Below, in pieces: positions 20,273-52,874 of a stretch of 64,000 nt of DNA. The position numbers were made by a program, and so were the translations under genes. Below the pieces are notes generated by a model that was not told the origin of the DNA, did no database searches, and saw nothing but the letters and a program-made list of their open reading frames with translations. Positions within the stretch are counted from its first letter, which is position 1. Every line of letters begins with the position of its first letter. Source of the DNA: Octopus sinensis (lineage: Eukaryota); assembly GCF_006345805.1 (NCBI RefSeq), contig NC_043004.1:53444001-53508000 (forward strand), written 5' to 3'.

Positions 20273-20276
<4 letters not shown>

Positions 20277-21346: not shown

Positions 21347-21376
21347 ATAATATATATAGATATATAATATATATAT

Positions 21377-21416
<40 letters not shown>

Positions 21417-21514
21417 ATATATAATATTATTAGAGACAAAACCACTATTTTGCAAAACAAACAAGGAAAGACTTAATCAATACATAAAATTTTAATAAAT
21501 AGTCAAAAAAACCG

Positions 21515-21560
21515 CCACTCTACAATCGTTTCTTGTCTTGATCGACAATCTTCAGGTGGA
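21515..21560 (-). ncRNA. Type I hammerhead, array copy 1 (2-nt insertion after the GTA triplet)
   Basis: CCAC-CTGAAGA-TTGTC(gatcaa)GACAA-GAAAC-GATT-GTA-ga-GTGG. Confidence 0.7.
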
Positions 21561-24500
21561 CTTCCAATCTAAAAAATCAATATTTTAAAATATAAAATAA
21601 TAATTTTAAAATAATTAAAGTATGAATGAAAAAGTTTAAGTATATAATCCATATATAACCTATATATAATCCATATATAATCAATAATATACAATATATA
21701 AACTAAAAAAAAACTATCAACATTAAATATAAACTATAAAATATAAAATATAAAATATAAAACAAAACAAAAAAATAATAATAATATAATAATAAACTAT
21801 ATATACAACACCATACACATATACCTAATTATATATAACCATATCTAACTACATACACTAAATCAACACCTATATATATATCCCTATACATACACATAAA
21901 AACGTCTAGGCAACTATAAATAAATAAAATAGCTAAATACTTCAACACAATACTTATTCATACTCCCACACACACACATACAACCCACATTCACGCTCTA
22001 GAAAACGGACATCACTCAAAACTATGAACGGAGAAATGGAATAAATGGAATTAAAAATTATATTCACTTGGTAAAAACGAACACTACTTAAAAATTATGA
22101 ATGAAACAATGCAATAAAACAACAGACATCGCAAATAGACACAAATTACTACGAATTCCTTAACAAACCTATCATGATAAACCAAAACTCATAAAAACAT
22201 ATAATGATAAAATCTCCCTTTACTAAACTCTATAACAAACCTATATAGCAATCCCCCTAACCTAAACATTCACACACAAATACACACACGTAAACCACAC
22301 ACCACCCACGACATATACAAATACCCACACCACTTACACATACCAATACATACATATAAACCTCAACATATACTCCAAAAACCCACTCAACCCCACACAG
22401 ACAAATAAACACAAAAATTATGAATGGATTCTTTTATAAAACTACCATGATAAGCTAAAACTCACAAAACAGAAATGATAAAACCTCCCTTTACTAAACA
22501 CTATAACATACTTATATAGCAATCCCTTTAACCTATACATTCACACACAAAAACACACACGTAAACCACACACCCATAACAAATACAAATACAAACCCCA
22601 CCCCACTCACACACACCCACAAGAACATATAAGCCTCAACATATACACCAAACAAAATTACTTTACCAAGGAACTTAACATATGTATAAAAAGTATAACC
22701 GCTCTGGAAACGAACATCTCTAAATTAATGAATGGAGAAATGGAATAAATGGAATTAAAAATAATATTCACGTGGCAAAACGAACACCACTCAAAAATTA
22801 TGAATGAAACAATGTAATAAAACAACCAACATCGAAAATAGACAAATTACCACGAATTCCCTAAAAAAAACATGATAAACCAAAACTCTTAAAAACATAT
22901 AACGATAAAATCTCCCTTTGCTAAACTCTATAACAAACCTATATAATAATCCCCCTAACCTAAACATTCACACACAAATACACACACGTAAACCACAGAC
23001 CCACGACTATACACATACCTATACTAACTTATAAACCTCAATATACACAAAACCCACTCACTCCCCACACAGACAAATTAACACATACATCCCAAACCTA
23101 AATAACAAACCCATATACACATTCACACACAAACACACACACACGCAAAACACACACACACAACGGATACATATACTCCCTCAAATATACGCATATACAT
23201 ACTCACTAAACTCGATATATACAACAATATTTACACCCCACACTCATACAGATAAATAAATTATACAACTAAAAACTCACACACAAACTCATATACATAA
23301 ACACTCCTATGAAAACAACATTAAATACATCGTAATTAACCAGAATATCAAAAATAACAATATGATATAAGGATAAATAAAAGACATACTTACAAGTCAG
23401 TTTCAAATTATGAAGTGAAATTAAATTCTTAGCCGTTAAAAAATCAAACCAAAATTACGTTACCATAGAAATAACTTATGTAAAAAAAGAATACGCGCCA
23501 TGGAAAGTAAACGTCATTTAAATTATGAATGGAGAAAAAGAATAAATGGAACTAAAAGCTATATCCACGTGGCAAACCAACACTACTTAAAAAAATTTAT
23601 TATGAATGGATTCTTTAAAAAACTACCATGAAAAATCATTATATACATTTATGAGCTTTAGCTCACCTTAGCAGCTCTAACAAACAACTTGCAGTAACCC
23701 AAACCCATTCTCTATGCCTACCTCACTCACACTACACTATTCCATTCACAATTCCAAACAACGCTAGTCCACCACCCGTAATTCACGTGGCAAAACGAAC
23801 ACCACTCAAAATTATGAATGAAACTATGTAATAAAACAACCAACATCGAAAATAGACAAATTACCACGAATTCCATATAAAAAAAAAACCATGATAAACC
23901 AAAACTCATAAAAACATATAACGATAAATCTCCCTTTGCTAAACTCTATAACAAACCTATATAGCAATCCTCCTAACCTAAACATTCACACACAAATACA
24001 CACACGAAAACCACAGACCCACAACTTATACACATACCTATACTAACTTATAAACCTCAATATACACCAAAACCCACTCCCTCCCCACACAGACAAATTA
24101 ACACATACATCCCAAAACCTAAATAACAACCCACATATACACATTCACAACAAACACACACACACGCAAAACACACACACACACAACAGATACATATACT
24201 CCCTCACATATACGCATACATACTCACTAAACTCGATATATACAACAATATTTACACACCCACACTCATACAGATAATAAATTATACAACTAAAAACTCA
24301 CCACACACAATCTCATATACATAACACTCCTATGAAAACAACATTAAATACATCGTAATTAACCAGAATATCAAAAATAACAATATGATATAAGGATAAA
24401 TAAAATACATACTTACAATTCAGTTTCAAATTATGAAGTGAAATTAAATTATATTCTTAGCCGTTAAAAAAACCAAACCAAAATTACGTTACCATAGAAA

Positions 24501-26063
24501 TAACTTATGAAAAAAAAAAAAAAAAATACGCGCCATAGAAAGTAAACGTCATTTAAATTATGAATGGAGAAATAGAATAAATGGAACTAAAAACTATATC
24601 CACGTAGCAAACCAACATTACTTAAAAAAATTTATTATGAATGGATTCTTTAAAAAACTACCATGAAAAATCATTATATACATTTATGAGCTTTAGCTCA
24701 CCTTAGCAGCTCTAACAAACAACTTGCAGTAACCCAAACCTATTCTCGATGCCTACCTCACTACCACACTAATCCATTCACAATTCCAAGCAACGCTAGT
24801 CCACCACCCCGGTTACAATTCCATTCTCCACCCATTCATTCACAATTTCAACGACATTCGCCTCCAGCGCTACATATAAGCCTCAACATATACACCGGAG
24901 ATACACTTACACATCCGTGCGGATGGGTGAGAGTATACATTGAGTGTAGTGATGGGGCTCCCATTACTATACACATTTGTACCTGTGTGGTAGTCTCCAT
25001 GTGTATATTCACGCACGGGTATAAATGCAGGGGGTACACGCGCACGTCATTTGCGTGTACCCCCTCACATGTACATATGCATGCTATTTGGGCTCGATAT
25101 ATGCAACAATGTAATCGCGCCCGCATACATGCATATGGGTGAATTGCACAATCAAAAAACGCACACGTGTGTGTGTGCGTTCCTTGGTTGTGCAATTCAC
25201 CCATCTGGGTGTGAGTGGGTGTAAGCGTATCGCTGTGGATGTCGAGCTTGATACGTATGTATATGAGTGTTATTAGGGGTTTGTACGTATTAATTGTGTG
25301 CATGTGCTTACGCACTTGCGTCCATGTATGGATGAATATTTGGGATTACTATGTGGGTGTAAATTGGGTATGGAGGGGGTAGTTTTGTCATTGTATGGGT
25401 GTGGTTTCATTTGTAATGGTGGTTAGTTGGTGATTTTTAGTATGTTCTGTATATTTGGGTTAGTTATGTATTATTCTAGTGTGTATAATTGTATACATAT
25501 AATGGTGTGAATGGGATTAAGCCCATTTGTGTGGATGTATGTGTTTATTTATCCATGTGGGGCGGGAGTGGCCGTTAGGTGTATATGCTGAGGCTCACAT
25601 GCAATTCCAGGTACAACGAATGAAGTGGGCACTTATATTTGTTATGGGTGTGTGTACTTTATTATAACAGACAATACCCAAATAAAATCTGTCAATTCAA
25701 CATACCAAATAAAAAACAAAAAACAAAGGGATCTTAAACATTCACACATACATACAAATCTCAAAAAAAACACCACTAAATAATACCCATAAACATATAA
25801 ATATTTCCTCCAAAATACATATAACAAATGCATAATAAGAATACATAATAAAATAAAAAAATTAAAAAAAAAAACCTAATATAAATTATTAAAGTTTTAA
25901 CGTACCATAAACTGTTAAATTAATATACATTAAAATGAACTAATTAAAACAAAGAAATATCAATAAAGACTAACTATAATTAAAGCCTAGACAACAAACC
26001 AAAAATATATTAACTAAACTAATTTAAACTAAACTAAAGTAACCTAAAAGGGAACTATTATTG

Positions 26064-28571
26064 CTATTTATCATGAAACTTATTATATAGGTAAAGTAAC
26101 TTATGTCTGCATTTTATTTTGCGCTCTTCACCAGTATTAAGTAAATTATCATACTTATAAAATAAAATTTCTTTAAACTCATTAGAGCATAAATAACAAC
26201 AATTAGCTCCTATAGTATATGATTATTTTTTACAAATTTCCTTCCCAAAGTAACTATAATTATATTTAGTGATTTAAGACTCCAAATGTACTTACTATTC
26301 CGGTTGAGTTGATTAAGTTTTTATTTTTAAAAGAATTCATATGTTGTGCGATTCTTAGTTTTATTTTTGAGGAAGTAGAACCTATATAAACCGCTTTTTG
26401 TAATTATTATTCTTAAGTTATTATCATGTAATGTAACTATACATTTATACACTACATCGTAATATCACAATTATTATTTAATATACAATTAGATTTATCT
26501 CTACATGTACAATTAATATAAGTCTTATCATTATTAATTATATATATCAAATAATTTCTTTTTATAAATATTATTCAGTTTATATTTATTAAATGAAGAA
26601 ATAATGTTCCCAACATTATTAGTGGTAGAGTAACCAACTCCAAAATTATTAAAAGAGAAAATGTTTCTATATTTACGATTATCTCTAATAAATAGTTCTA
26701 TAACATCTAAAATCTCTTTAATAATATTCGTTTTTACTTGATCTCCATAAGGAACTATTAACCAAATTTTATTCTTTTTAACCTTATTATTATTATCATT
26801 ATTATAATATATATTTATAATTCTTTATTTTATTAAAATTATTATCAGAATTATATCTATGTACAGCATTTAAGGAATTATTAATATTATTAAATTTATC
26901 AATATAATTATTATAATAATTATTAAATTTATTTTTATTTATATTATTCTTATTTATATTATTATTATTATATTTATTATTATTATTATTATTCTTATTT
27001 ATTTTTTATCATTTTTATTATTTTTTTTTAATATCTATTATTTTTACCACTAAACCTAACAAAATTATAATTATTATTAGAAGTATTTCGAAAATTAACA
27101 ATTAAATCTTTATCACTAATATTATAAAATTAATATTCCTATTATAACCTGCCCCTCTAAGGGCCTCATTATAATAATTAGCATGTTTATTAAAAATCTC
27201 TATATCATAAGAGAGTAATGAAATACGTTTACTTATATTATTAATCAACGATTTTTTAATAGAAAATGGGTGATTACTATTAACATTTATATATCTAAGG
27301 TTCTCATTAAGTTTATGATATGGTTGTGTTTTACCTGTAATAAGTTTAAAATTAACATCTAAATAATTAACATTATAATTCTCCTTATATATAGTAATAC
27401 TTAAACCATATCTTTTAAAGAAACTATATAGTTTTTTCTTATATACTTCTAGATTCCTATTAGTACAATTCTTTGTAACTAGTAGAAGATCGTCTCTATA
27501 TAAACACCCTCTATCTTAAGATTTTCTAATTGGAGTTCAGATAAAAGAAAAATACCTACTAAATCAGTAGCCTGTGCAGAATCTGGTGCTCCCATAGGTA
27601 TATCAAAACATTCTCTAGTATCATTCCTAGCCCATAATTTATTTTTATATTTAATTAGCGATTTCCTAGCCATTTTAATTACATTAACTTCTTCCCGTGA
27701 CATACCCACTTTATTCATTGCGAAAATAAGCGCTTTATTAAACACAATTTCATTAATAGAAGAATAATAATTATCTATATCTATTTGAATAAATTTATAA
27801 CGATTTTTATCTTTAATATTATTAAACCATTTCAATGTATTATTATTACTAAACCATAATTTTAAATAATTAAGTTTATTTAACTTATCAATATATTTAT
27901 CTAAAATAAATTTACTTAATTTACCTAGGTCCGATTTACATGGGCAAATTAATCTAACTTTAGGGTCTGAATAAAAATTATCTTTATGGTCTTTAAGAGT
28001 AATTCTGGGGTGCAAAGGTACATAAGGTTCAGTTTTATTATCCAACTCATATTTTAACATTACTACTTTAGAGGCCTTATTAATATTATAAAGAATATCA
28101 TCTGGAACAATTTTATATTTTTTAATTATTTTTCCCTAATAGTTTATCATATAATTTAACATCTAATTTATATAAGTTCCTTGTTTTATCAGATTGTACT
28201 ATAATACCATCCATAATTCTCATATCTTTAATTTTAATTGCTAAATTCCTTAAATATTCATTATTTCTATTTGGGTATTTATGGAATTCAATATTTTTTA
28301 CCACCTTCCATATACTATCTTCAAGTAATTGTAATTCTTTATTAAATGGAGGTTCCTTTCTAGATTTAAATTTAGAGGTAAAATTATCATTCCTACTATC
28401 AATATCATTAAATAAATAAAAATTATAGTAAAAAGCTTTCCATTTAATTCTAGAAATAAAATCTTTAACATTATTAACAAGTTTCAAGATAAATTCCTTT
28501 CTAGAAGGAATAGGAATATCTTTCAAAGATGAATCCCAAAACAGCGGTTCTATCTTACCTGTAAAATCCAT
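26064..28571 (-). CDS. PLE polyprotein copy 1 (RT + GIY-YIG, Naiad-like), ~835 aa if the frameshifts are corrected
   Basis: MDFTGKIEPL..SLKDIPIPS..FISRIKWKAF; HPRITLKDHKDNF..VRLICPCKSDLGKLSK; DIDNYYSSI; IPMGAPDS; YRDD; YLDVNF; NSNHP; CTCRDKSNC..VVYKC..YIGST..CYLC..CRH. Several indels. No 190-bp insertion in this copy. Confidence 0.9.
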
Positions 28572-28805
28572 AATTTTCGAAATTGAGGTATTACACTCAA
28601 TATACAAAATTATCAATATTATATAAATAATAAATATTAGGGAATAAATCCAAATTTACAGGGAAAAAAATCAGATTTAGGATTAAATCCAATTTTATAG
28701 TAAAATATTATAAAATATTATTAGAGACAAAACCACTATTTTGCAAAACAAACAAGGAAAGACTTAATCAATACATAAAATTTTAATAAATAGTCAAAAA
28801 AACCG

Positions 28806-28848
28806 CCACTACAATCGTTTCTTGTCTTGATCGACAATCTTCAGGTGG
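28806..28848 (-). ncRNA. Type I hammerhead, array copy 2 (intact)
   Basis: CCAC-CTGAAGA-TTGTC(gatcaa)GACAA-GAAAC-GATT-GTA-GTGG. Confidence 0.9.
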
Positions 28849-31800
28849 ACTTCCAATCTAAAAAATCAATATTTTAAAATATAAAAATAATAATTTTAAA
28901 TAATTAAGTATGAATGAAAAAGTTTAAGTATATAATCCATATATAACCTATATATAATCCATATATAATCAATATATAAACAATATATAAACTAAAAAAA
29001 ACCTATCAACAATTAAATATAAAATAAAAATATAAAATATAAATATAAAACAAAACAAAAAAATAATAATAATATAATAATAAACTATATATACACCCAT
29101 ACACATATACCTAATTATATATAACCATATCTAACTACATACACTAAATCACACACCTATATATATATCCCTATACATACACATAAAAACGTCTAGGCAA
29201 CTATAAATAAATAAAATAGCTAAATACTTCAACACAATACTTATTCATACTCCCACACACACACACATAACCCCACATTCACGCTCTAGAAAACGGACAT
29301 CACTCAAAACTATGAACGGAGAAATGGAATAAATGGAATTAAAAATTATATTCACTTGGTAAAAACGAACACTACTTAAAAATTATGAATGAAACAATGC
29401 AATAAAACAACAGACATCGCAAATAGACACAGATTACTACGAATTCCTTAACAAACCTATCATGATAAACCAAAACTCATAAAAACATATAATGATAAAA
29501 TCTCCCTTTACTAAACTCTATAACAAACCTATAGCAATCCCCCTAACCTAAACATTCACACACAAATACACACACGTAAACCACACACCCACGACATATA
29601 CAAATACCCACACCACTTACACATACCAATACATACATATAAACCTCAACATATACTCCAAAAACCCACTCAACCCCACACAGACAAATAAACACAAAAA
29701 TTATGAATGGATTCTTTTTAAAACTACCATGATAAGCTAAAACTCCAAAACAGAAATGATAAAACCTCCCTTTACTAAACACTATAACATACTTATATAG
29801 CAATCCCTTTAACCTATACATTCACACACAAAAACACACACGTAAACCACACACCCATAACAAATACAAACACCCACCCCACTCACACACACCCACAAGA
29901 ACATATAAGCCTCAACATATACACCAAACAAAATTACTTTACCAAGGAACTTAACATATGTATAAAAAGTATAACCGCTCTGGAAACGAACATCTCTAAA
30001 TTAATGAATGGAGAAATGGAATAAATGGAATTAAAAATAATATTCACGTGGCAAAACGAACACCACTCAAAAATTATGAATGAAACAATGTAATAACACA
30101 ACCAACATCGAAAATAGACAAATTACCACGAATTCCCTAAAAAAAACCATGATAAACCAAAACTCTTAAAAACATATAACGATAAATCTCCCTTTGCTAA
30201 ACTCTATAACAAACCTATATAATAATCCCCCTAACCTAAACATTCACACACAAATACACACACGTAAACCACAGACCACACGACTTATACACATACCTAT
30301 ACTAACTTATAAACCTCAATATACACCAAAACCCACTCACTCCACCACAGACAAATTAACACATACATCCCAAAACCTAAATAACAAACCCATATACACA
30401 TTCACACACAAACACACACACACGCAAAACACACACACACAACGGATACATATACTCCCTCAAATATACGCATACACATACTCACTAAACTCGATATATA
30501 CAACAATATTTACACACCCACACTCATACAGATAAATAAATTATACAACTAAAAACTCACACACAAACTCATATACATAAACACTCCTATGAAAACAACA
30601 TTAAATACATCGTAATTAACCAGAATATCAAAAATAACAATATGACATAAGGATAAATAAAAGACATACTTACAAGTCAGTTTCAAATTATGAAGTGAAA
30701 TTAAATTCTTAGCCGTTAAAAAATCAAACCAAATTTACGTTACCATAGAAATAACTTATGTAAAAAAAGAATACGCGCCATGGAAAGTAAACGTCATTTA
30801 AATTATGAATGGAGAAATAGAATAAATGGAACTAAAAGCTATATCCACGTGGCAAAACAACACTACTTAAAAAAATTTTATTATGAATGGATTCTTTAAA
30901 AAACTACCATGAAAAATCATTATATACATTTATGAGCTTTAGCTCACCTTAGCAGCTCTAACAAACAACTTGCAGTAACCCAAACCCATTCTCTATGCCT
31001 ACCTCACTACTACACTATTCCATTCACAATTCCAAACAACGCTAGTCCACCACCCGGTAATTCACGTGGCAAAACGAACACCACTCAAAAATTATGAATG
31101 AAACTATGTAATAAAACAACCAACATCGAAAATAGACAAATTACCACGAATTCCATATAAAAAAAAAACCATGATAAACCAAAACTCATAAAAACATATA
31201 ACGATAAATCTCCCTTTGCTAAACTCTATAACAAACCTATATAGCAATCCCCCTAACCTAAACATTCACACACAAATACACACACGTAAACCACAGACCA
31301 CAACTTATACACATACCTATACTAACTTATAAACTCAATATACACCAAAACCCACTCCCTCCACACAGAAAATTAACACATACATCCCAAAACCTAAATA
31401 ACAAACCCATATACACATTCACACACAAACACACACACACGCAAAACACACACACACAACAGATACATATACTCCTCACATATACGCATATACATACTCA
31501 CTAAACTCGATATATACAACAATATTTACACACCCACACTCATACAGATAAATAAATTATACAACTAAAAACTCACACACAATCTCATATACATAAACAC
31601 TCCTATGAAAACAACATTAAATACATCGTAATTAACCAGAATATCAAAAATAACAATATGATATAAGGATAAATAAAATACATACTTACAATTCAGTTTC
31701 AAATTATGAAGTGAAATTAAATTATATTCTTAGCCATTAAAAAAACCAAACCAAAATTACGTTTCCATAGAAATAACATATGAAAAAAAAAAAAAAAAAA

Positions 31801-34053
31801 AATACGCGCCATAGAAAGTAAACGTCATTTAAATTATGAATGGAGAAATAGAATAAATGGAACTAAAAACTATATCCACGTAGCAAACCAACACTACTTA
31901 AAAAAATTTATTATGAATGGATTCTTTAAAAAACTACCATGAAAAATCATTATATACATTTATGAGCTTTAGCTCACCTTAGCAGCTCTAACAAACAACT
32001 TGCAGTAACCCAAACCTATTCTCGATGCCTACCTCACTACCACACTAATCCATTCACAATTCCAAGCAACGCTAGTCCACCACCCGGTTACAATTCCCAA
32101 CTCCACCCATTCATTCACAATTTCAACGACATTCGCCTCCACAGCGCTACATATAAGCCTCAACATATACGGAGATACACTTACACATCCGTGCGGATGG
32201 GTGAGAGTATACATTGAGTGTAGTGATGGGGCTCCCATTACTATACACATTTGTACTGTGTGGTAGTCTCCATGTGTATATTCACGCACGGGTATAAATG
32301 CAGGGGTACACGCGCACGTCATTTGCGTGTACCCCCTCACATGTACATATGCATGCTATTTGGGCTCGATATATGCAACAATGTAATCGCGCCCGCATAC
32401 ATGCATATGGGTGAATTGCACAATCAAAAAACGCACACGTGTGTGTGTGCGTTCCCTGGTTGTGCAATTCACCCATCTGGGTGTGAGTGGGTGTAAGCGT
32501 ATCGCTGTGGATGTCGAGCTTGATACGTATGTATATGAGTGTTTATTAGGGGGTTGTACGTATTAATTGTGTGCATGTGCTTACGCACTTGCGTCCATGT
32601 ATGGATGAATATATTGGGATTACTATGTGCGTGTAAATTGGGTATGGAGGGGGTAGTTTTGTCATTGTATGGGTGTGGGTTTCATTTGTAATGGTGGTTA
32701 GTTGGTGATTTTTAGTATGTTCTGTATATTTGGGTTAGTTATGTATTATTCTAGTGTGTATAATTGTATACATATAATTGGTGTGAATGGGATTAAGCCC
32801 ATTTGTGTGGATGTATGTGTTTATTTATCCATGTGGGGCGGGAGTGGCCGTTAGGTGTATATGCTGAGGCTCACATGCAATTCCAGGTACAACGAATGAA
32901 GTGGGCACTTAAATTTGTTATGGGTGTGTGTACTTTATTATAACAGACAATACCCAAATAAAATCTGTCAATTCAACATACCAAATAAAAAACAAAAAAC
33001 AAAGGGATCTTAAACATTCACACATACATACAAATCTCAAAAAAAAACACCACTAAATAATACCCATAAACATATAAATATATCCTCCAAAATACATATA
33101 ACAAATGCATAATAAGAATACATAATAAAATAAAAAAATAAAAAAAAAAACCTAATATAAATTATTAAAGTTTTAACGTACCATAAACTGTTAAATTAAT
33201 ATACATTAAAATGAACTAAACTAGTTTAGTTTAAATTAGTTTAGTTAATATATTTTTGGTTTGTTGTCTAGGCTTTAATTATAGTTAGTCTTTATTGATA
33301 TTTCTTTGTTTTAATTAGTTCATTTTAATGTATATTAATTTAACAGTTTATGGTACGTTAAAACTTTAATAATTTATATTAGGTTTTTTTTTTTATTTTA
33401 TTTTATTATGTATTTTTATTATGCATTTGTTATATGTATTTTGGAGGATATATTTATATGTTTATGGGTATTATTTAGTGGTGTTTTTATTGAGATTTGT
33501 ATGTATGTGTGAATGTTTAAGATCCCTTTGTTTTTTGTTTTTTATTTGGTATGTTGAATTGACAGATTTTATTTGGGTATTGTCTGTTATAATAAAGTAC
33601 ACACACCCATAACAAATATAAGTGCCCACTTCATTCGTTGTACCTGGAATTGCATGTGAGCCTCAGCATATACACCTAACGGCCACTCCCGCCCCACATG
33701 GATAAATAAACACATACATCCACAAAAATGGGCTTAATCCCATTCACACCAATTATATGTATACAATTATACACACTAGAATAATACATAACTAACCCAA
33801 ATATACAGAACATACTAAAAATCACCAACTAACCACCATTACAAATGAAACCCACACCCATACAATGACAAAACTCCCCCTTCCATACCCAATTTACAGC
33901 CACATAGTAATCCCAATATATTCATCCATACATGGACGCAAGTGCGTAAGCACATGCACACAATTAATACGTACAACCCCCTAATACACACTCATATACA
34001 TACGTATCAAGCTCGACATCCACAGCGATACGCTTACACCCACTCACACCCAG

Positions 34054-34348
34054 ATGGGTGAATTGCACAACCAGGGAACGCACACACACACGTGTGCGTT
34101 TTTTGATTGTGCAATTCACCCATATGCATGTATGCGGGCGCGATTACATTGTTGCATATATCGAGCCCAAATAGCATGCATATGTACATGTGAGGGGGTA
34201 CACGCAAATGACGTGCGCGTGTACCCCCTGCATTTATACCCGTGCGTGAATATACACATGGAGACTACCACATAGGTACAAATGTGTGTATAGTAATGGG
34301 AGCCCCATCACTACACTCAATGTATACTCTCACCCATCCGCACGGATG
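34054..34348 (+). other. Cluster of strong hairpins in the element's non-coding region (present in all five copies)
   Basis: 17-bp stem ATGGGTGAATTGCACAA/TTGTGCAATTCACCCAT (34054-34123) enclosing AACGCACAC/GTGTGCGTT; 13-bp stem AGGGGGTACACGC/GCGTGTACCCCCT (34193-34229); CATCCG/CGGATG (34335-34348). Confidence 0.85.
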
Positions 34349-34453
34349 TGTAAGTGTATCTCCGGTGTATATGTTGAGGCTTATATGTAGCGCTGTGGAG
34401 GCGAATGTCGTTGAAATTGTGAATGAATGGGTGGAGTTGGGAATTGTAAACGG

Positions 34454-37690: not shown

Positions 37691-37733
37691 CCACCTGAAG
37701 ATTGTCGATCAAGACAAGAAACGATTGTAGTGG
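37691..37733 (+). ncRNA. Type I hammerhead, array copy 3 (intact)
   Basis: CCAC-CTGAAGA-TTGTC(gatcaa)GACAA-GAAAC-GATT-GTA-GTGG. Confidence 0.9.
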
Positions 37734-37965
37734 CGGTTTTTTTGACTATTTATTAAAATTTTATGTATTGATTAGTCTTTCCTTGTTTGTTTTGCAAAAT
37801 AGTGGTTTTGTCTCTAATAATATTTTATAATATTTTACTATAAAATTGGATTTATCCTAAATCTGATTTTTTTCCCTGTAAATTTGGATTTATTCCCTAA
37901 TATTTATTATTTATATAATATTGATAATTTTGTATATTGAGTGTAATACCTCAATTTCGAAAATT

Positions 37966-40643: not shown

Positions 40644-43600
40644 CAATAATAGTTCCCTTTTAGGTTACTTTAGTTTAGTTTAAATTAGTTTAGTTAATAT
40701 TTTTTTGGTTTGTTGTCTAGGCTTTAATTATAGTTAGTCTTTATTGATATTTATTTGTTTTAATTAGTTCATTTTAATGTATATTAATTTAACAGTTTAT
40801 GGTACGTTAAAACTTTAATAATTTATATTAGGTTTTTTTTTTTTTTATTTTATTATGTATTTTTATTATGCATTTGTTATATGTATTTTGGAGGATATAT
40901 TTATATGTTTATGGGTATTATTTAGTGGTGTTTTTATTGAGATTTGTATGTATGTGTGAATGTTTAAGATCCCTTTGTTTTTTGTTTTTTATTTGGTATG
41001 TTGAATTGACAGATTTTATTTGGGTATTGTCTGTTATAATAAAGTACACACACCCATAACAATATAAGTGCCCACTTCATTCGTTGTACCTGGAATTGCA
41101 TGTGAGCCTCAGCATATACACCTAACGGCCACTCCCGCCCCACATGGATAAATAAACACATACATCCACAAAATGGGCTTAATCCATTCACACCAATTAT
41201 ATGTATACAATTATACACACTAGAATAATACATAACTAACCCAAATATACAGAACATACTAAAAATCACCAACTAACCACCATTACAAATGAAACCCACA
41301 CCATACAATGACAAAACTCCCCCCTCCATACCCATTTACACCCACATAGTAATCCCAATATATTCATCCATACATGGACGCAAGTGCGTAAGCACATGCA
41401 CACAATTAATACGTACAACCCCCTAATACACACTCATATACATACGTATCAAGCTCGACATCCACAGCGATACGCTTACACCCACTCACACCCAGATGGG
41501 TGAATTGCACAACCAGGGAACGCACACACACACGTGTGCGTTTTTTGATTGTGCAATTCACCCATATGCATGTATGCGGGCGCGATTACATTGTTGCATA
41601 TATCGAGCCCAAATAGCATGCATATGTACATGTGAGGGGGTACACGCAAATGACGTGCGCGTGTACCCCCTGCATTTATACCCGTGCGTGAATATACACA
41701 TGGAGACTACCACACAGGTACAAATGTGTATAGTAATGGGAGCCCCATCACTACACTCAATGTATACTCTCACCCATCCACGGATGTGTAAGTGTATCTC
41801 CGGTGTATATGTTGAGGCTTATATGTAGCGCTGTGGAGGCGAATGTCGTTGAAATTGTGAATGAATGGGTGGAGTTGGGAATTGTACCGGGTGGTGGACT
41901 AGCGTTGCTTGGAATTGTGAATGGATTAGTGTGTAGTGAGGTAGGCATCGAGAATAGGTTTGGGTTACTGCAAGTTGTTTGTTAGAGCTGCTAAGGTGAG
42001 CTAAAGCTCATAAATGTATATAATGATTTTTCATGGTAGTTTTTTAAAGAATCCATTCATAATAAATTTTTTTAAGTAGTGTTGGTTTGCTACGTGGATA
42101 TAGTTTTTAGTTCCATTTATTCTATTTCTCCATTCATAATTTAAATGACGTTTACTTTCTATGGCGCGTATTTTTTTTTTTTTTTTTTTCATAAGTTATT
42201 TCTATGGTAACGTAATTTTGGTTTGGTTTTTTTAACGGCTAAGAATATAATTTAATTTCACTTCATAATTTGAAACTGAATTGTAAGTATGTATTTTATT
42301 TATCCTTATATCATATTGTTATTTTTGATATTCTGGTTAATTACGATGTATTTAATGTTGTTTTCATAGGAGTGTTTATGTATATGAGATTGTGTGTGAG
42401 TTTTTAGTTGTATAATTTATTTATCTGTATGAGTGTGGGTGTGTAAATATTGTTGTATATATCGAGTTTAGTGAGTATGTATATGCGTATATGTGAGGGA
42501 GTATATGTATCTGTTGTGTGTGTGTGTTTTGCGTGTGTGTTGTTTTGTGTGTGAATGTGTATATGGGTTTGTTATTTAGGTTTTGGATATATGTGTTAAT
42601 TTGTCTGTGGGGGGGGGGAGTGGGTTTTGGTGTATATTGAGGTTTATAAGTTAGTATAGGTATGTGTATAAGTTGTGGGTCTGTGGTTTACGTGTGTGTA
42701 TTTGTGTGTGAATGTTTAGGTTAGGAGGATTGCTATATAGGTTTGTTATAGAGTTTAGCAAAGGGAGATTTTCTCGTATATGTTTTTATGAGTTTTGGTT
42801 ATCATGGTTTTTGTTTTTTTTTTAGGGAATTCGTGGTAATTTGTCTATTTTCGATGTTGGTTGTTTTATTACATAGTTTCATTCATAATTTTTGAGTGTT
42901 GTTCGTTTTGCCACGTGAATTACCGGGTGGTGGACTAGCGTTGTTTGGAATTGTGAATGGAATAGTGTAGTAGTGAGGTAGGCATAGAGAATGGGTTTGG
43001 GTTACTGCAAGTTGTTTGTTAGAGCTGCTAAGGTGAGCTAAAGCTCATAAATGTATATAATGATTTTTCATGGTAGTTTTTTAAAGAATCCATTCATAAT
43101 AAAATTTTTTTAAGTAGTGTTGGTTTGCCACGTGGATATAGCTTTTAGTTCCATTTATTCTTTTTCTCCATTCATAATTTAAATGACGTTTACTTTCCAT
43201 GGCGCGTATTCTTTTTTTACATAAGTTATTTCTATGGTAACGTAATTTTGGTTTGGTTTTTTTAACGGCTAAGGATTTAATTTCACTTCATAATTTGAAA
43301 CTGACTTGTAAGTATGTCTTTTATTTATCCTTATGTCATATTGTTATTTTTGATATTCTGGTTAATACGATGTATTTAATGTTGTTTTCATAGGAGTGTT
43401 TATGTATATGAGTTTGTGTGTGAGTTTTTAGTTGTATAATTTATTTATCTGTATGAGTGTGGTGGGTGTAAATATTGTTGTATATATCGAGTTTAGTGAG
43501 TATGTATATGCGTATATTTGAGGGAGTATATGTATCCGTTGTGTGTGTGTGTGTTTTGCGTGTGTGTGTGTGTTTGTGTGTGAATGTGTATATGGGTTTG

Positions 43601-45129
43601 TTATTTATGTTTTGGGATGTATGTGTTAATTTGTCTGTGTGGGGAGTGAGTGGGTTTTGGTGTATATTGAGGTTTATAAGTTAGTATAGGTATGTGTATA
43701 AGTCGTGGGTCTGTGGTTTACGTGTGTGTATTTGTGTGTGAATGTTTAGGTTAGGGGGATTATTATATAGGTTTGTTATAGAGTTTAGCAAAGGGAGATT
43801 TATCGTTATATGTTTTTAAGAGTTTTGGTTTATCATGGTTTTTTTAGGGAATTCGTGGTAATTTGTCTATTTTCGATGTTGGTTGTGTTATTACATTGTT
43901 TCATTCATAATTTTTGAGTGGTGTTCGTTTTGCCACGTGAATATTATTTTTAATTCCATTTATTCCATTTCTCCATTCATTAATTAGAGATGTTCGTTTC
44001 CAGAGCGGTTATACTTTTTATACATATGTTAAGTTCCTTGGTAAAGTAATTTGTGTTGGTGTATATGTTGAGGCTTATATGTTCTTGTGGGTGTGTGTGA
44101 GTGGGGTGGGTGTTTGTATTTGTTATGGGTGTGTGGTTTACGTGTGTGTTTTGTGTGTGAATGTATAGGTTAAAGGGATTGCTATATAAGTATGTTATAG
44201 TGTTTAGTAAAGGGAGGTTTTATCATTTTTTTATGAGTTTTAGCTTATCATGGTAGTTTTATAAAAGAATCCATTCATAATTTTTGTGTTTATTTGTCTG
44301 TGTGGGGTTGAGTGGGTTTTTGGAGTATATGTTGAGGTTTATATGTATGTATTGGTATGTGTAAGTGTGGTGGTGTGGGTATTTGTATATGTCGTGGGTG
44401 TGTGGTTTACGTGTGGTGTATTGTGTGTGAATGTTTAGGTTAGGGGGATTGCTATATAGGTTTGTTATAGAGTTTAGTAAAGGGAGATTTTATCATTATA
44501 TGTTTTTATGAGTTTTGGTTTATCATGATAGGTTTGTTAAGGAATTCGTAGTAATCTGTGTCTATTTGCGATGTTGTCTGTTGTTTTATTGCATTGTTTC
44601 ATTCATAATTTTTAAGTAGTGTTCGTTTTTACCAAGTGAATATAATTTTTAATTCCATTTATTCCATTTCTCCGTTCATAGTTTTGAGTGATGTCCGTTT
44701 TCTAGAGCGTGAATGTGGGTTGTATGTGTGTGTGTGTGGGAGTATGAATAAGTATTGTGTTGAAGTATTTAGCTATTTTATTTATTTATAGTTGCCTAGA
44801 CGTTTTTATGTGTATGTATAGGGATATATATATAGGTGTGTGATTTAGTGTATGTAGTTAGATATGGTTATATATAATTAGGTATATGTGTATGGGTGTA
44901 TATATAGTTTATTATTATTATTATTATTTTTTTGTTTTGTTTTATTATTTTTATAGTTTATATTTAATTGTTGATAGGTTTTTTTTAGTTTATATTGGTA
45001 TATATTGATTATATATGGATTATATATAGGTTATATATGGATTATATACTTATATTTTTTCATTCATACTTTAATTATTTAAAATTATTATTTTTATATT
45101 TTAAAATATTGATTTTTTAGATTGGAAGT

Positions 45130-45176
45130 CCACCTGAAGATTGTCGATCAAGAAAGAAGAAGAACGATTGTAGTGG
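45130..45176 (+). ncRNA. Type I hammerhead, array copy 4 (stem II 3' strand and GAAA corrupted)
   Basis: ccacctgaagattgtcgatcaagaaagaagaagaacgattgtagtgg. The corruption may be a sequencing error. Confidence 0.55.
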
Positions 45177-45410
45177 CGGTTTTTTTGACTATTTATTAAA
45201 ATTTTATGTATTGATTAAGTCTTTCCTTGTTTGTTTTGCAAAATAGTGGTTTTGTCTCTAATAATATTTTATAATATTTTACTATAAAATTGGATTTAAT
45301 CCTAAATCTGATTTTTTTCCCTGTAAATTTGGATTTATTCCCTAATATTTATTATTTATATAATATTGATAATTTTGTATATTGAGTGTAATACCTCAAT
45401 TTCGAAAATT

Positions 45411-48101
45411 ATGGATTTTACAGGTAAGATAGAACCGCTGTGTTTGGGATTCATCTTTGAAAGATATTCCTATTCCTTCTAGAAAGGAATTTATCTTGAA
45501 ACTTGTTAATAATGTTAAAGATTTTATTTCTAGAATTAAATGGAAAGCTTTTTACTATAATTTTTATTTATTTAATGATATTGATAGTAGGAATGATAAT
45601 TTTACCTCTAAATTTAAATCTAGAAAGGAACCTCCATTTAATAAAGAATTACAATTACTTGAAGATAGTATATGGAAGGTGGTAAAAAATATTGAATTCC
45701 ATAAATACCCAAATAGAAATAATGAATATTTAAGGAATTTAGCAATTAAAATTAAAGATATGAGAATTATGGATGGTATTATAGTACAATCTGATAAAAC
45801 AAGGAACTTATATAAATTAGATGTTAAATTATATGATAAACTGGATTTAATCCTAAATCTATGTGTATGGGTGTATATATAGTTTATTATTATATTATTA
45901 TTATTTTTTTGTTTTGTTTTATATTTTATAGTTTATATTTAATTGTTGATAGGTTTTTTTTAGTTTATATATTGTTTATATATTGATTATATATGGATTA
46001 TATATAGGTTATATATGGATTATATACTTATAGAAATAATTAAAAAATATAAAATTGTTCCAGATGATATTCTTTATAATATTAATAAGGCCTCTAAAGT
46101 AGTAATGTTAAAATATGAGTTGGATAATAAAACTGAACCTTATGTACCTTTGCACCCCAGAATTACTCTTAAAGACCATAAAGATAATTTTTATTCAGAC
46201 CCTAAAGTTAGATTAATTTGCCCATGTAAATCGGACCTAGGTAAATTAAGTAAATTTATTTTAGATAAATATATTGATAAGTTAAATAAACTTAATTATT
46301 TAAAATTATGGTTTAGTAATAATAATACATTGAAATGGTTTAATAATATTAAAGATAAAAATCGTTATAAATTTATTCAAATAGATATAGATATTATTAT
46401 ATTCTTCTATTAATGAAATGTGTTTAATAAAGCGCTTATTTTCGCAATGAATAAAGTGGGTATGTCACGGGAAGAAGTTAATGTAATTAAAATGGCTAGG
46501 AAATCGCTAATTAAATAAAAAATAAATTATGGGCTAGGAATGATACTAGAGAATGTTTTGATATACCTATGGGAGCACCAGATTCTGCACAGGCTACTGA
46601 TTTAGTAGGTATTTTTCTTTTATCTGAACTCCAATTAGAAAATCTTAAGATAGAGGGTGGTTTATATAGAGACGATCTTCTACTAGTTACAAAGAATTGT
46701 ACTAATAGGAATCTAGAAGTATATAAGAAAAAACTATATAGTTTCTTTAAAAGATATGGTTTAAGTATTACTATATATAAGGAGAATTATAATGTTAATT
46801 ATTTAGATGTTAATTTTAAACTTATTACAGGTAAAACACAACCATATCATAAACTTAATGAGAACCTTAGATATATAAATGTTAATAGTAATCACCCATT
46901 TTCTATTAAAAAATCGTTGATTAATAATATAAGTAAACGTATTTCATTACTCTCTTATGATATAGAGATTTTTAATAAACATGCTAATTATTATAATGAG
47001 GCCCTTAGAGGGGCAGGTTATAATAGGAATATTAATTTTATAATATTAGTGATAAAGATTTAATTGTTAATTTTCGAGATACTTCTAATAATAATTATAA
47101 TTTTGTTAGGTTTATTGGTAAAAATAATAGATATTATAAAAAAAATAATAAAAATGATAAAAATATAAATAAGAATAATAATAATAATAATAAATATAAT
47201 AATAATAATATAAATAAGAATAATATAAATAAAAATAAATTTAATAATATTATAATAATTATATTGATAAATTTAATAATATTAATAATTCCTTAAATGC
47301 TGTACATAGATATAATTCTGATAATAATTTTAATAAAATAAAGAATTATAAAATATTTATAATAATGATAATAATAATAAGGTTAATAAGAATAAAATTT
47401 GGTTAATAGTTCCTTATGGAGATCAAGTAAAAACGAATATTATTAAAGAGATTTTAGATGTTATAGAACTATTTATTAGAGATAATCGTAAATATAGAAA
47501 CATTTTCTCTTTTTAATTTTTTGGAGTTGGTTACTCTACCACTAATAATGGGGAACATTATTTCTTCATTTAATAAATATAAACTGAATAATATTTATAA
47601 AAAGAAATTATTTGATAATAATATTAATAATGATAAGACTTATATTAATTGTACATGTAGAGATAAATCTAATTGTATATTAAATAATAATTGTGATATT
47701 AACGATGTAGTGTATAAATGTATAGTTACATTACATGATAATAACTTTAAGAATAATAATTACAAAAAAGCGGTTTATATAGGTTCTACTTCCTCAAAAA
47801 TAAAACTAAGAATCGCACAACATATGAATTCTTTTAAAAATAAAAACTTAATCAACTCAACCGCACTTAGTAAGTACATTTGGAGTCTTAAATCACTAAA
47901 TATTAATTATAGTTTACTTTGGGAAATAATTTGTAAAACTAAATCATATACTATAGGAGCTAATTGTTGTTATTTATGCTCTAATGAGTTTAAAGAAATT
48001 TATTTTATAAGTATGATAATTTACTTAATACTGGTGAAGAGCGCAAAATAAAATGCAGACATAAGTTACTTTACCTATATAATAAGTTTCATGATAAATA
48101 G
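45411..48101 (+). pseudogene. PLE polyprotein copy 3, carrying the same ~190-bp insertion
   Basis: ORF-track pieces 45457-45882, 46015-46413, 46569-47063 and 47521-48051 (GIY-YIG: VVYKC..AVYIGSTS..CYLCSNE). TAG at 48099-48101. Confidence 0.9.
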
Positions 48102-51100
48102 CAATAATAGTTCCCTTTTAGGTTACTTTAGTTTAGTTTAAATTAGTTTAGTTAATATATTTTTGGTTTGTTGTCTAGGCTTTAATTATAGTTAGTCTTT
48201 ATTGATATTTATTTGTTTTAATTAGTTCATTTTAATGTATATTAATTTAACAGTTTATGGTACGTTAAAACTTTAATAATTTATATTAGGTTTTTTTTTT
48301 TTATTTTATTATGTATTTTTATTATGCATTTGTTATATGTATTTTGGAGGATATATTTATATGTTTATGGGTATTATTTAGTGGTTTTTTTATTGAGATT
48401 TGTATGTATGTGTGAATGTTTAAGATCCCTTGTTTTTTGTTTTTTATTTGGTATGTTGAATTGACAGATTTTATTTGGGTATTGTCTGTTATAATAAAGT
48501 ACACACACCCATAACAAATATAAGTGCCCACTTCATTCGTTGTACCTGGAATTGCATGTGAGCCTCAGCATATACACTAACGGCCACTCCCGCCCCACAT
48601 GGATAAATAAACACATACATCCACAAAATGGGCTTAATCCCATTCACACCAATTATATGTATACAATTATACACACTAGAATAATACATAACTAACCCAA
48701 ATATACAGAACATACTAAAAATCACCAACTAACCACCATTACAAATGAAACCCACACCCATACAATGACAAAACTCCCCCCTCCATACCCAATTTACACC
48801 CACATAGTAATCCCAATATATTCATCCATACATGGACGCAAGTGCGTAAGCACATGCACACAATTAATACGTACAACCCCCTAATACACACTCATATACA
48901 TACGTATCAAGCTCGACATCCACAGCGATACGCTTACACCCACTCACACCCAGATGGGTGAATTGCACAACCAGGGAACGCACACACACTCGTGTGCGTT
49001 TTTTGATTGTGCAATTCACCCATATGCATGTATGCGGGCGCGATTACATTGTTGCATATATCGAGCCAAATAGCATGCATATGTACATGTGAGGGGGTAC
49101 ACGCAAATGACGTGCGCGTGTACCCCCTGCATTTATACCCGTGCGTGAATATACACATGGAGACTACCACACAGGTACAAATGTGTATAGTAATGGGAGC
49201 CCCATCACTACACTCAATGTATACTCTCACCCATCCGCACGGATGTGTAAGTGTATCTCCGGTGTATATGTTGAGGCTTATATGTAGCGCTGTGGAGGCG
49301 AATGTCGTTGAAATTGTGAATGAAGGGTGGAGTTGGGAATTGTAACCGGGTGGTGGACTAGCGTTGCTTGGAATTGTGAATGGATTAGTGTGGTAGTGAG
49401 GTAGGCATCGAGAATAGGTTTGGGTTACTGCAAGTTGTTTGTTAGAGCTGCTAAGGTGAGCTAAAGCTCATAAATGTATATAATGATTTTTCATGGTAGT
49501 TTTTTAAAGAATCCATTCATAAAAAATTTTTTTAAGTAGTGTTGGTTTGCTACGTGGATATAGTTTTTAGTTCCATTTATTCTATTTCTCCATTCATAAT
49601 TTAAATGACGTTTACTTTCTATGGCGCGTATTTTTTTTTTTTTTTTTTCATAAGTTATTTCTATGGTAACGTAATTTTGGTTTGGTTTTTTTAACGGCTA
49701 AGAATATAATTTAATTTCACTTCATAATTTGAAACTGAATTGTAAGTATGTATTTATTTATCCTTATATCATATTGTTATTTTTGATATTCTGGTTAATT
49801 ACGATGTATTTAATGTTGTTTTCATAGGAGTGTTTATGTATATGAGATTGTGTGTGAGTTTTTAGTTGTATAATTTATTTATCTGTATGAGTGTGGGTGT
49901 GTAAATATTGTTGTATATATCGAGTTTAGTGAGTATGTATATGCGTATATGTGAGGGAGTATATGTATCTGTTGTGTGTGTGTGTTTTGCGTGTGGTGTG
50001 TTTTGTGTGTGTGAATGTGTATATGGGTTTGTTATTTAGGTTTTGGGATATATGTGTTAATTTGGTGTGTGGGGAGGGAGTGGGTTTTGGTGTATATTGA
50101 GGTTTATAAGTTAGTATAGGTATGTGTATAAGTTGTGGGTCTGTGGTTTACGTGTGTGTATTGTGTGTGAATGTTTAGGTTAGGAGGATTGCTATATAGG
50201 TTTGTTATAGAGTTTAGCAAAGGGAGATTTATCGTTATATGTTTTTATGAGTTTTGGTTATCATGGTTTTTGTTTTTTTTTTAGGGAATTCGTGGTAATT
50301 TGTCTATTTTCGATGTTGGTTGTTTTATTACATAGTTTCATTCATAATTTTTGAGTGTTGTTCGTTTTGCCACGTGAATACCGGGGTGGTGGACTGCGTT
50401 GTTTGGAATTGTGAATGGAATAGTGTAGTAGTGAGGTAGGCATAGAGAATGGGTTTGGGTTACTGCAAGTTGTTTGTTAGAGCTGCTAAGGTGAGCTAAA
50501 GCTCATAAATGTATATAATGATTTTTCATGGTAGTTTTTTAAAGAATCCATTCATAATAAAATTTTTTTAAGTAGTGTTGGTTTGCCACGTGGATATAGT
50601 TTTTAGTTCCATTTATTCTTTTTCTCCATTCATAATTTAAATGACGTTTACTTTCCATGGCGCGTATTCTTTTTTTACATAAGTTATTTCTATGGTAATT
50701 TTGGTTTTTGGTTTTTTTTTTTAACGGCTAAGGATTTAATTTCACTTCATAATTTGAAACTGACTTGTAAGTATGTCTTTTATTTATCCTTATGTCATAT
50801 TGTTATTTTTGATATTCTGGTTAATTACGATGTATTTAATGTTGTTTTCATAGGAGTGTTTATGTATATGAGTTTGTGTGTGAGTTTTTAGTTGTATAAT
50901 TTATTTATCTGTATGAGTGTGGGTGTGTAAATATTGTTGTAATATCGAGTTTAGTGAGTATGTATATGCGTATATTTGAGGGAGTATATGTATCCGTTGT
51001 GTGTGTGTGTGTTTTGCGTGTGTGTGTGTTTGTGTGTGAATGTGTATATGGGTTGTTATTTATGTTTGGGATGTATGTGTTAATTTGTCTGTGTGGGGAG

Positions 51101-52578
51101 TGAGTGGGTTGGTGTGTATATTGAGGTTTATAAGTTAGTATAGGTATGTGTATAAGTCGTGGGTCTGTGGTTTACGTGTGTGTATTTGTGTGTGAATGTT
51201 TAGGTTAGGGGGATTATTATATAGGTTGTTATAGAGTTTAGCAAAGGGAGATTTATCGTTATATGTTTTTAAGAGTTTTGGTTTATCATGGTTTTTTTAG
51301 GGAATTCGTGGTAATTTGTCTATTTTCGATGTTGGTTGTTTTATTACATTGTTTCATTCATAATTTTTGAGTGGTGTTCGTTTTGCCACGTGAATATTAT
51401 TTTTAATTCCATTTATTCCATTCTCCATTCATTAATTTAGAGATGTTCGTTTCCAGAGCGGTTATACTTTTTATACATATGTAAGTTCCTTGGTAAAGTA
51501 ATTTTGTTTGGTGTATATGTTGAGGCTTATATGTTTCTGTGGGGGTGTGTGTGAGTGGGGTGGGTGTTTGTATTTGTTATGGGTGTGTGGTTTACGTGTG
51601 TGTTTTTGTGTGTGAATGTATAGGTTAAAGGGATTGCTTATATAAGTATGTTATAGTGTTTAGTAAAGGGAGGTTTTATCATTTCTGTTTTGTGAGTCTT
51701 AGCTTATCATGGTAGTTTTATAAAAGAATCCATTCATAATTTTTGTGTTTATTTGTCTGTGTGGGGTTGAGTGGGTTTTTGGAGTATATGTTGAGGTTTA
51801 TATGTATGTATTGGTATGTGTAAGTGGTGTGGGTATTTGTATATGTCGTGGGTGTGTGGTTTACGTGTGTGTATTTGTGTGTGAATGTTTAGGTTAGGGG
51901 GATTGCTATATAGGTTTGTTATAGAGTTTAGTAAAGGGAGATTTTATCATTATATGTTTTTATGAGTTTTTGGTTTATCATGATAGGTTTGTTAAGGAAT
52001 TCGTAGTAGTAATCTGTGTCTATTTGCGATGTCTGTTGTTTTATTGCATTGTTTCATTCATAATTTTTAAGTAGTGTTCGTTTTTACCAAGTGAATATAA
52101 TTTTTAATTCCATTTATTCCATTTCTCCGTTCATAGTTTTGAGTGATGTCCGTTTTCTAGAGCGTGAATGTGGGTTGTATGTGTATGTGTGTGGGAGTTA
52201 TGAATAAGTATTGTGTTGAAGTATTTAGCTATTTTATTTATAGTTGCCTAGACGTTTTTATGTGTATGTATAGGGATATATATATAGGTGTGTGATTTAG
52301 TGTATGTAGTTAGATATGGTTATATATATTAGGTATATGTGTATGGGTGTGTATATATAGTTATTATTATATTATTATTATTTTTTTGTTTTGTTTTATA
52401 TTTTATAGTTTATATTTAATTGTTGATAGGTTTTTTTTGTTATATATTGTTTATATATTGATTATATATGGATTTATATAGGTTATATATGGATTATATA
52501 CTTAAACTTTTTCATTCATACTTTAATTATTTAAAATTATTTTTATATTTTAAAATATTGATTTTTTAGATTGGAAGT

Positions 52579-52621
52579 CCACCTGAAGATTGTCGATCAA
52601 GACAAGAAACGATTGTAGTGG
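52579..52621 (+). ncRNA. Type I hammerhead, array copy 5 (intact)
   Basis: Same motif as copies 2 and 3. Confidence 0.9.
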
Positions 52622-52792
52622 CGGTTATTTTGACTATTTATTAAAATTTTATGTATATGATTAAGTCTTTCCTTGTTTGTTTTGCAAAATAGTGGTTTTG
52701 TCTCTAATAATATTTTATAATATTTTACTATAAAATTGGATTTAATCCTAAATCTATTTTTTTCCCTGTAAATTTGGATTATTCCCTAATAT

Positions 52793-52870
<78 letters not shown>

Positions 52871-52874
<4 letters not shown>

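Follow-up and report, generated by a model that had tools for sequence, protein, structure and literature searches.

A 31-kb head-to-head Penelope-like element array in Octopus sinensis is an unusually large example of its family's usual insertion layout

Here we analyze a 64,000-nt window of the Octopus sinensis genome (RefSeq assembly GCF_006345805.1, contig NC_043004.1, positions 53,444,001 to 53,508,000 of the forward strand), which contains a 31-kb array of a hammerhead-bearing Penelope-like element (PLE). The array comprises five copies of a long non-coding repeat, or pseudo-long terminal repeat (pLTR), and three copies of an open reading frame (ORF) for a putative reverse transcriptase (RT) followed by a predicted C-terminal GIY-YIG endonuclease, arranged head to head in two arms between (TA)n microsatellites. 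The array is probably a single, ordinary complex insertion of a young, high-copy PLE with a C-terminal endonuclease, belonging to the Hydra clade, into a (TA)n tract of the octopus genome. It constitutes an unusually large example of the insertion layout that is usual for this family, and not evidence for a new mechanism of rolling-circle copying.

The structure of the array, its unit count and its junction are given as read from the assembly. Self-BLAST of the window reveals one unit on both strands, repeated 1.62 times in the minus arm and 2.63 times in the plus arm, where its period is 7449 bp (positions 33222, 40671 and 48129 are equivalent); the pLTR accounts for 4.7 kb. We define the unit coordinate u as the window position minus 33221. 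The arms are 97-98% identical by BLAST, and their 5′ ends meet in a perfect palindrome of 18 nt, in which two bases (33220-33221) form part of neither arm; the sequence of this 5′-to-5′ junction is unique in the 2.7-Gb host genome that was searched. The plus arm begins at u1, 27 nt past the ORF stop codon, and the minus arm at u94, 93 nt deeper in the unit. At their outer ends, the minus arm finishes at u4621 and the plus arm at u4700, that is, 113 and 192 nt beyond the hammerhead cut (u4508), and both are followed directly by (TA)n. Most of this architecture had been anticipated in the initial annotation of the window, which described a unit of 7.3-7.45 kb occurring about 1.6 times on the minus and 2.6 times on the plus strand, an arm start just past the ORF stop and arm ends past a hammerhead in (TA)n, and which recognized a hammerhead-bearing PLE with an unusually long non-coding repeat. 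The near-perfect inverted repeat that it also described holds in terms of sequence identity, but the arms do not form a simple foldback, the plus-arm ORFs holding an extra 186-bp segment. The coordinates of all features are collected in Table 1.

Table 1. Features of the array and its flanks in the 64,000-nt window
Position	Strand	Feature
21330-21405		TA-rich microsatellite, left flank (target site)
21406-33219	-	Minus arm: outer pLTR, ORF, inner pLTR; 3′ end at proximal start site u4621, 5′ end at u94
21406-25943	-	Minus-arm outer pLTR copy; hammerhead near 21555 with a 2-nt insertion after the cut site
26064-28571	-	RT/GIY-YIG ORF copy M1; frameshifted, without the 186-bp rearrangement
28616-33219	-	Minus-arm inner pLTR copy; intact hammerhead at 28806-28848, cut after 28810
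33214-33231		18-nt palindrome at the arm junction
33222-52810	+	Plus arm: pLTR, ORF, pLTR, ORF, pLTR; 5′ end at u1, 3′ end at distal start site u4700
34449-36499	+	Two tandem ~1.03-kb internal pLTR repeats, ~94% alike
37691-37733	+	Intact type-I hammerhead; cut after GUA at 37729
37966-40643	+	RT/GIY-YIG ORF copy P1, interrupted
38393-38578	+	186-bp rearrangement in P1
45130-45181	+	Mutated hammerhead copy; helix II and GAAA box lost
45411-48101	+	RT/GIY-YIG ORF copy P2; interrupted and carrying the 186-bp rearrangement seen in P1
45843-46033	+	186-bp rearrangement in P2
52579-52621	+	Intact hammerhead of the last pLTR copy
52732-52810	+	79-nt tail between proximal and distal start sites; plus arm only
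52811-52872		(TA)n microsatellite, right flank
34048-34129, 41490-41571, 48948-49029, 32401-32482, 25129-25210		pLTR hairpin copies

The three RT/GIY-YIG ORFs reported by the initial annotation are present as copies, but none of them is open: M1, P1 and P2 are all interrupted, and no stop-free piece exceeds 218 codons. Each of these copies carries 8-13 private single-nucleotide indels, compared with 0-8 in copies elsewhere, and their indel-to-substitution ratios range from about 0.7:1 to 4:1. The private indels fall mostly outside homopolymers, and their excess is greater here than in sister loci. Its probable cause is consensus error in the assembly of a palindromic, multi-copy region; given this resemblance to the errors of long-read consensus sequences, it is uncertain whether the ORFs are truly 'broken', and the same uncertainty applies to the fine-scale site patterns considered below.

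The query for the endonuclease consisted of the C-terminal 163 residues, taken from a part of a sister copy that is free of interruptions, and identified 2909 relatives at E ≤ 0.001. An alignment of 48 homologues preserves the motifs CxCX5C, VVY...YIG, R, CxxC-E and N...CxH, and CCHH is absent from both the translation and this alignment. An AlphaFold model of the domain (predicted local distance difference test score, 86.7) matches I-TevI with a Z-score of 9.4 and a root-mean-square deviation of 2.5 over 90 of 92 residues (VIA-align), followed by T4 EndoII (Z 7.2), PD-T4-3 (Z 5.7) and UvrC-N (Z 5.4), with the next row at Z 4.2. A Foldseek search with the same model yielded weak rows only, Hpy188I and EndoII among them. 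On the basis of the model, the C-terminal domain is predicted to adopt the GIY-YIG endonuclease fold. For the putative reverse transcriptase, the Y and DD of the LYRDD motif are invariant in 30 homologues. The RT homologues include Apostichopus and Octopus proteins, the nearest named protein being from Octopus vulgaris; one homologue is named as a reverse transcriptase domain protein in UniRef, and Atlas clusters carry RVT_1. The ORF also carries long Asn-rich inserts, and a homologue search with a 327-aa C-terminal piece returned no match, probably as a result of Asn-rich words filling the candidate list. Sequence searches of the PDB with an RT piece, an N-terminal piece and an endonuclease profile provided nothing useful.

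All five hammerhead sites listed by the initial annotation can be located, but the motif is intact in only three of them (Table 1). The core CUGAAGA..GAAA..GUA is present together with helices I, II and III, and defines a type-I hammerhead with a helix I of 4 bp, a helix II of 5 bp and the self-complementary ACGAUUGU as helix III. In metazoan PLEs, a self-complementary helix III characterizes the dimer type (PMC4209133), and the sequence is that expected of a dimer-type hammerhead located, as in other PLEs, in the pLTR. A strict hand-written descriptor of the motif matched the three intact copies in the window and nothing in 300 random 64-kb sequences, and the hammerhead is identical in 22 of 27 sampled copies of the family. 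Every pLTR copy of the array contains the pair of ~1.03-kb internal repeats, the number of which ranges from one to three at other loci (L001L002, L009L010 and L019L020 versus L011L012 and L017L018), as well as a near-perfect hairpin of ~82 nt in its GC-richest part, which has weak sub-threshold matches to Rfam microRNA precursor models. In one subfamily, u1-175 is replaced by ~70 bp of other sequence.

The endonucleases of the Hydra clade of PLEs are characterized by a CxCX5C linker, the absence of CCHH, and CxxC and CxH motifs flanking conserved E and N residues (PMC8557442). The endonuclease motifs of the octopus element match this description exactly, and place it, as far as sequence motifs can tell, in the Hydra clade. 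The predicted endonuclease fold, the linker motifs, the hammerhead motif in the pLTR, the layout with tandem and inverted copies and a tail, and the insertion into (TA)n are all traits of the clade, as are a single ORF with a putative RT preceding a C-terminal GIY-YIG domain, and relatives in molluscs and in Apostichopus, a host named for the Hydra clade (PMC8557442). In members of this clade, moreover, DKT stands in place of DKG and the N-terminal part contains an RWK motif (PMC8557442); for these two traits, only look-alike strings (..DNKT.. and ..IKWK..) were seen here. Unlike Hydra-clade families, which are described as short, generally < 3 kb, the octopus unit measures 7449 bp and has a 4.7-kb pLTR with kilobase-scale tandem repeats and a long hairpin, but short length is a descriptive and not a defining trait. 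Its tail is likewise longer (79 nt, compared with 30-40 nt in described Hydra-clade PLEs), and the long Asn-rich inserts of its ORF set it apart from them.

A search of the genome returned 1764 candidates for the family, of which the 40 that were scored are 96-98% identical, and substitutions among ORF copies amount to 0.1-1.6%; the family is young and high-copy, its copy number lying in the range of roughly 300-1700. We mapped the unit on ten other loci, taking 20 kb of each. Seven of the ten have a head-to-head layout, in which an inverted, 5′-truncated arm lies against the 5′ end of the main arm, with junctions at u1|3878, 4862|2828, 4648|1998, 4512|4498, 4402|4273, 3998|4007 and 2869|2813. 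With the junction of the window included, five out of eight are near-symmetric (offset < 130 nt). The initial annotation had raised the question whether other arrays share the same phase of start and end. The outer ends do map to two shared sites, but the 5′ junction positions differ in the seven head-to-head loci, and a start just after the stop codon is hence no rule of the family.

Of 20 outer ends, 19 finish in ..CTCTAATAATATT (u~4621) or ..CCCTAATATTTATT (u~4700), followed by TA repeats, and the remaining one (the minus arm of L019L020) corresponds to u4621 by unit alignment. The two motifs mark look-alike start sites that precede the ORF start by a short distance, and the 79-nt interval between them is the PLE 'tail'. 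In seven of eight pairs one arm ends at the proximal and the other at the distal site (binomial P about 0.035 if the choice is independent). A tree based on 0.9 kb of the pLTR places copies from the same locus as nearest relatives in all six other loci with at least two copies, and puts the five copies of the window in a weakly supported group with four copies from two other loci. Head-to-head pairs are the norm in this family, which targets (TA)n. Partial tandems, an adjacent inverted 5′-truncated copy, a one-sided tail and a bias for (TA)n are typical features of PLEs (Craig 2021, PMC8557442). Taken together, the results on sister loci indicate that each complex locus originates in one insertion event, that its outer ends are the primed 3′ ends and that the template exceeds one unit.

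Several individual loci provide additional observations. In L005L006 (G000:C1:176840218-176860217), an independent insertion, the inverted arm ends at position 7612 exactly at u1, the same nucleotide as the plus arm of the window, and this common end could be a point at which the RNA preferentially begins or the RT preferentially stops. According to hit coordinates only, G000:C10:73465548-73478711 contains ORFs in minus, plus and plus orientation, with the plus copies 5583 bp apart, and is a second array with one inverted and two tandem ORFs; hit coordinates likewise point to a multi-ORF array on C2. At positions 8234-16504, L013L014 (G000:C4:121818260-121838259) carries a tandem array, with a period of 4.08 kb, of an internally deleted derivative in which pLTR position u1104 is joined to u4216; the u4216 breakpoint also bounds the 186-bp rearrangement of the window. 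The 5′ end of this tandem array (position 8234) lies beside TA repeats and ≤1 nt from the hammerhead cut, a single case that is suggestive of a circle. The same locus holds, at 4316-4632, a mini head-to-head insertion of ~320 bp with its junction in the palindromic helix-III sequence.

Both outer ends of the window array coincide with the canonical RT start sites of the family beside (TA)n, which implies that both target ends primed complementary DNA (cDNA). This agrees with the initial annotation, which had both target ends priming and the two cDNAs joined at their 5′ ends, and which had further postulated a multimeric template, a notion that stands inasmuch as the template exceeded one unit. 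Priming from both target ends on an RNA of more than one unit is supported here, but it is already part of the published PLE picture: in vitro, a PLE protein cuts and extends both strands and initiates reverse transcription at two internal sites next to each other, and an mRNA comprising multiple copies has been proposed as the template (PMC11167929). The mechanism put forward in the initial annotation largely coincides with the published PLE model. In the insertion that we favor, the dimeric RT-endonuclease of the element would cut both strands of a TA tract, and each DNA end would prime cDNA synthesis internally on a read-through RNA longer than one unit (pLTR-ORF-pLTR, about 12 kb), with one end using the proximal and the other the distal start site. 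The two cDNAs would end at almost coincident 5′ positions (u1 and u94) and be joined there at a short palindrome, generating a near-symmetric palindrome of about 1.6 units per arm. The 186-bp rearrangement would then arise in the plus-arm ORF, and one unit would be gained through unequal exchange between the 4.7-kb direct pLTRs; we consider the chances of this later history to be about even.

The 186-bp segment of P1 and P2 substitutes for 11 bp of common ORF sequence, is made of the pLTR pieces u4623-4647 and u4216-4394, and is missing from M1. The possibility that it is an intron was ruled out, since it replaces 11 bp, is made of pLTR pieces and fails to restore the common frame upon GT..AG removal. 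Full-length matches to the rearrangement junctions were found only in P1 and P2, both for the left junction (among the 40 best of 321 candidates) and for the right junction (among the 40 best of 1395 candidates), and no lesion-bearing source elsewhere in the genome was encountered among these candidates. From this private rearrangement it follows that both plus-arm ORFs derive from a single lesion-bearing unit. Had 2.6 units been reverse-transcribed directly, whether from a linear or a circular template, a lesion-bearing source would be needed, but a later unequal exchange needs none. In addition, five sites (at u1929-2943) are common to the plus-arm pLTRs P2 and P3 and one (u3571) to P1 and P2, an order that weakly fits a hybrid middle pLTR. 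We therefore regard later unequal exchange as a more likely origin of the extra plus-arm unit than 2.6 rounds of reverse transcription. An exchange of this kind would make the locus an originally symmetric palindrome of 1.6 + 1.6 units, like its sister loci.

Several results weigh against parts of this interpretation. The case for unequal exchange relies on six sites, five of which are within the internal 1-kb repeats, where the alignment is ambiguous; ORF divergence between P1 and P2 (0.6%) is not clearly below that of P1 with respect to other loci, and three other places can be aligned at 84% over the junction on the right of the rearrangement. In the minus arm, 7 substitutions missing from the plus arm are common to both pLTRs, and a further 15 are private to the ORF, so the template of the minus arm may have been a different RNA molecule, or the arm may have been homogenized since. 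The unit count and the junction depend on the assembly alone. As regards the identity of the element, Pfam gave no RVT or GIY-YIG match for the window ORF pieces, the longer open frame of another copy or eight homologues, and a fold search with an RT fragment placed HIV RT, diversity-generating retroelement RT and group II RT at Z 5.5-6.4 among unrelated rows. Similarly, Rfam detected no hammerhead in the window at the gathering threshold or at E ≤ 10, and returned only weak matches to microRNA models.

Among the alternatives, the one that withstands these data best is the model of the initial annotation without circles: the direct templates of both arms, including all 2.6 units of the plus arm, would have been long, linear, multimeric RNAs transcribed from an older tandem array in the genome. 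The units are indeed seamless, with no segment duplicated at the hammerhead or at the start sites, arrays with multiple ORFs recur (minus, plus and plus at C10:7346-7347, and two tandem ORFs in L013L014), and a template consisting of a multi-copy mRNA has been put forward (Frangieh 2024, PMC11167929). Such an origin would require a 19.6-kb template, and no source array with two lesion-bearing units appears among the best-scoring genome candidates; we judge it unlikely.

The initial annotation had inferred rolling-circle-like amplification of an autonomous PLE from multimeric or circular hammerhead-processed RNA. In a rolling-circle process, hammerhead self-cleavage and ligation would generate a 7.4-kb circular RNA, and an autonomous 7.45-kb element would be copied by reverse transcriptase traveling round the circle 1.6 and 2.6 times, with both target ends priming on the same circle at two neighboring sites. 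Circular RNA and reverse transcription over more than one unit have already been proposed in print as a source of PLE tandems (PMC4209133), seamless multimers would be expected, repeated copying of one unit fits the private lesion common to P1 and P2, and the one 5′ end of L013L014 at 8234 lies ≤1 nt from a hammerhead cut. In the window, however, neither arm begins at the cut site, and nothing favors a circular hammerhead-processed RNA over linear read-through transcripts. A lesion-bearing RNA would still need a lesion-bearing DNA source, which is not found among the best-scoring genome candidates, and the units within an arm differ, with sharing between adjacent units and not private changes alone. 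Moreover, hammerhead cleavage is dispensable in vitro, and no reads were found to end at the cut (Frangieh 2024, PMC11167929). Rolling-circle copying is for these reasons very unlikely; if true, it would make the array the first autonomous retrozyme-like PLE caught mid-process.

An assembly artefact, in which the palindrome or the unit number would stem from a long read that was chimeric or folded back, or from a repeat counted wrongly, is just as improbable. The window does show more single-nucleotide indels than other loci, at ratios typical of an unpolished long-read consensus, but its arms differ in their 93-nt offset, the 186-bp rearrangement, their outer ends and arm-specific substitutions, which is unlike a simple foldback of one molecule, and the same layout is present in seven of the ten other loci. 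Snap-back copying of one arm from the other is ruled out here by the rearrangement, the outer ends and the arm-specific substitutions. Least credible of all are two independent insertions lying side by side in opposite orientation in the same TA tract, for although the tract is a hot spot, with a small hammerhead element of another family 80 bp away on the left, and arm-specific sites differ, the 5′ ends are 2 nt apart with no TA repeat between them, whereas independent ends of the family border (TA)n, and 5′-to-5′ abutment recurs in seven of ten loci, in which the arms are nearest relatives.

A single insertion primed from both target ends invites comparison with Poseidon PAc of Anolis carolinensis, a PLE of a different clade (PMC11167929). 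In both systems both strands of an AT-rich target prime, the template exceeds one unit, and the tail is explained by a pair of adjacent internal RT start sites where pLTR and ORF meet. Reverse transcription of PAc starts 111-118 nt into the ORF, at sites without homology to the target, whereas the start sites of the octopus element precede the ATG by 45 and 124 nt and fall in AU-rich sequence similar to the TA target. The choice of start site in PAc shows no strand bias in vitro; here the two arms usually use different ones. The octopus element also resembles animal non-LTR retrozymes and small hammerhead circular RNAs (PMC4209133; bioRxiv 10.64898/2026.07.22.740005) in having a dimer-type type-I hammerhead once per unit and tandem and inverted genomic copies, and in the link to PLE pLTRs that has been proposed for retrozymes. 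Retrozymes are, however, short (hundreds of nt), non-autonomous, non-coding, hammerhead-delimited and known as circular RNAs; the 7.45-kb unit encodes a putative RT-endonuclease, and its insertion ends are not at the cut.

In twin priming of L1, the second target end reportedly also primes, and the outcome is said to be an inversion within one insertion event, with little duplicated sequence. In the octopus family, by comparison, both arms copy the same region and give rise to a long palindrome, which is the regular outcome here and not an exceptional one. Terminons, the giant Athena-type PLEs (Arkhipova 2017, via PMC8557442), are similarly much longer than canonical elements and hammerhead-bearing, but as summarized in that source they are telomere-associated, with many ORFs and mostly without an endonuclease, whereas the octopus element has one ORF and an endonuclease and is dispersed in TA microsatellites.

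The array illustrates the published PLE insertion model cleanly and on a large scale, and opens no new mechanism. The different start sites in seven of eight pairs, together with 5′ ends that are often close, hint at the possibility that a single RNA, in one dimeric ribonucleoprotein, serves both DNA ends as template, which constitutes a testable refinement of the in vitro work. The element also extends the Hydra clade to members much larger than those described, and arrays of this kind are error-prone places for long-read assemblies.

Two further elements were noted in the window. Positions 20145-21330, 80 bp to the left of the array and in a (TA)68 tract, contain a small head-to-head element of another family. 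This unrelated element (20257-21330) has arms of ~450 bp (20257-20706 and 20799-21248) that are 96% alike, each with a hammerhead-like motif (20403-20458, minus; 21048-21103, plus). Its left arm ends in ..CCCTCAATATAA followed by TA, and its right arm, which extends ~100 nt further, in ..ATCCTCAATCGTTAA followed by TA, reproducing the proximal/distal asymmetry of the giant element. On the minus strand, positions 10095-10505, together with 8979-9010, hold a fragment of the endonuclease of a different Hydra-type PLE (..SLAKYVWELK..CKLCLLEK..CRH..), which adjoins low-complexity frames rich in Ile, Leu and Tyr (10728-11351) and has a weak hammerhead-like core downstream.

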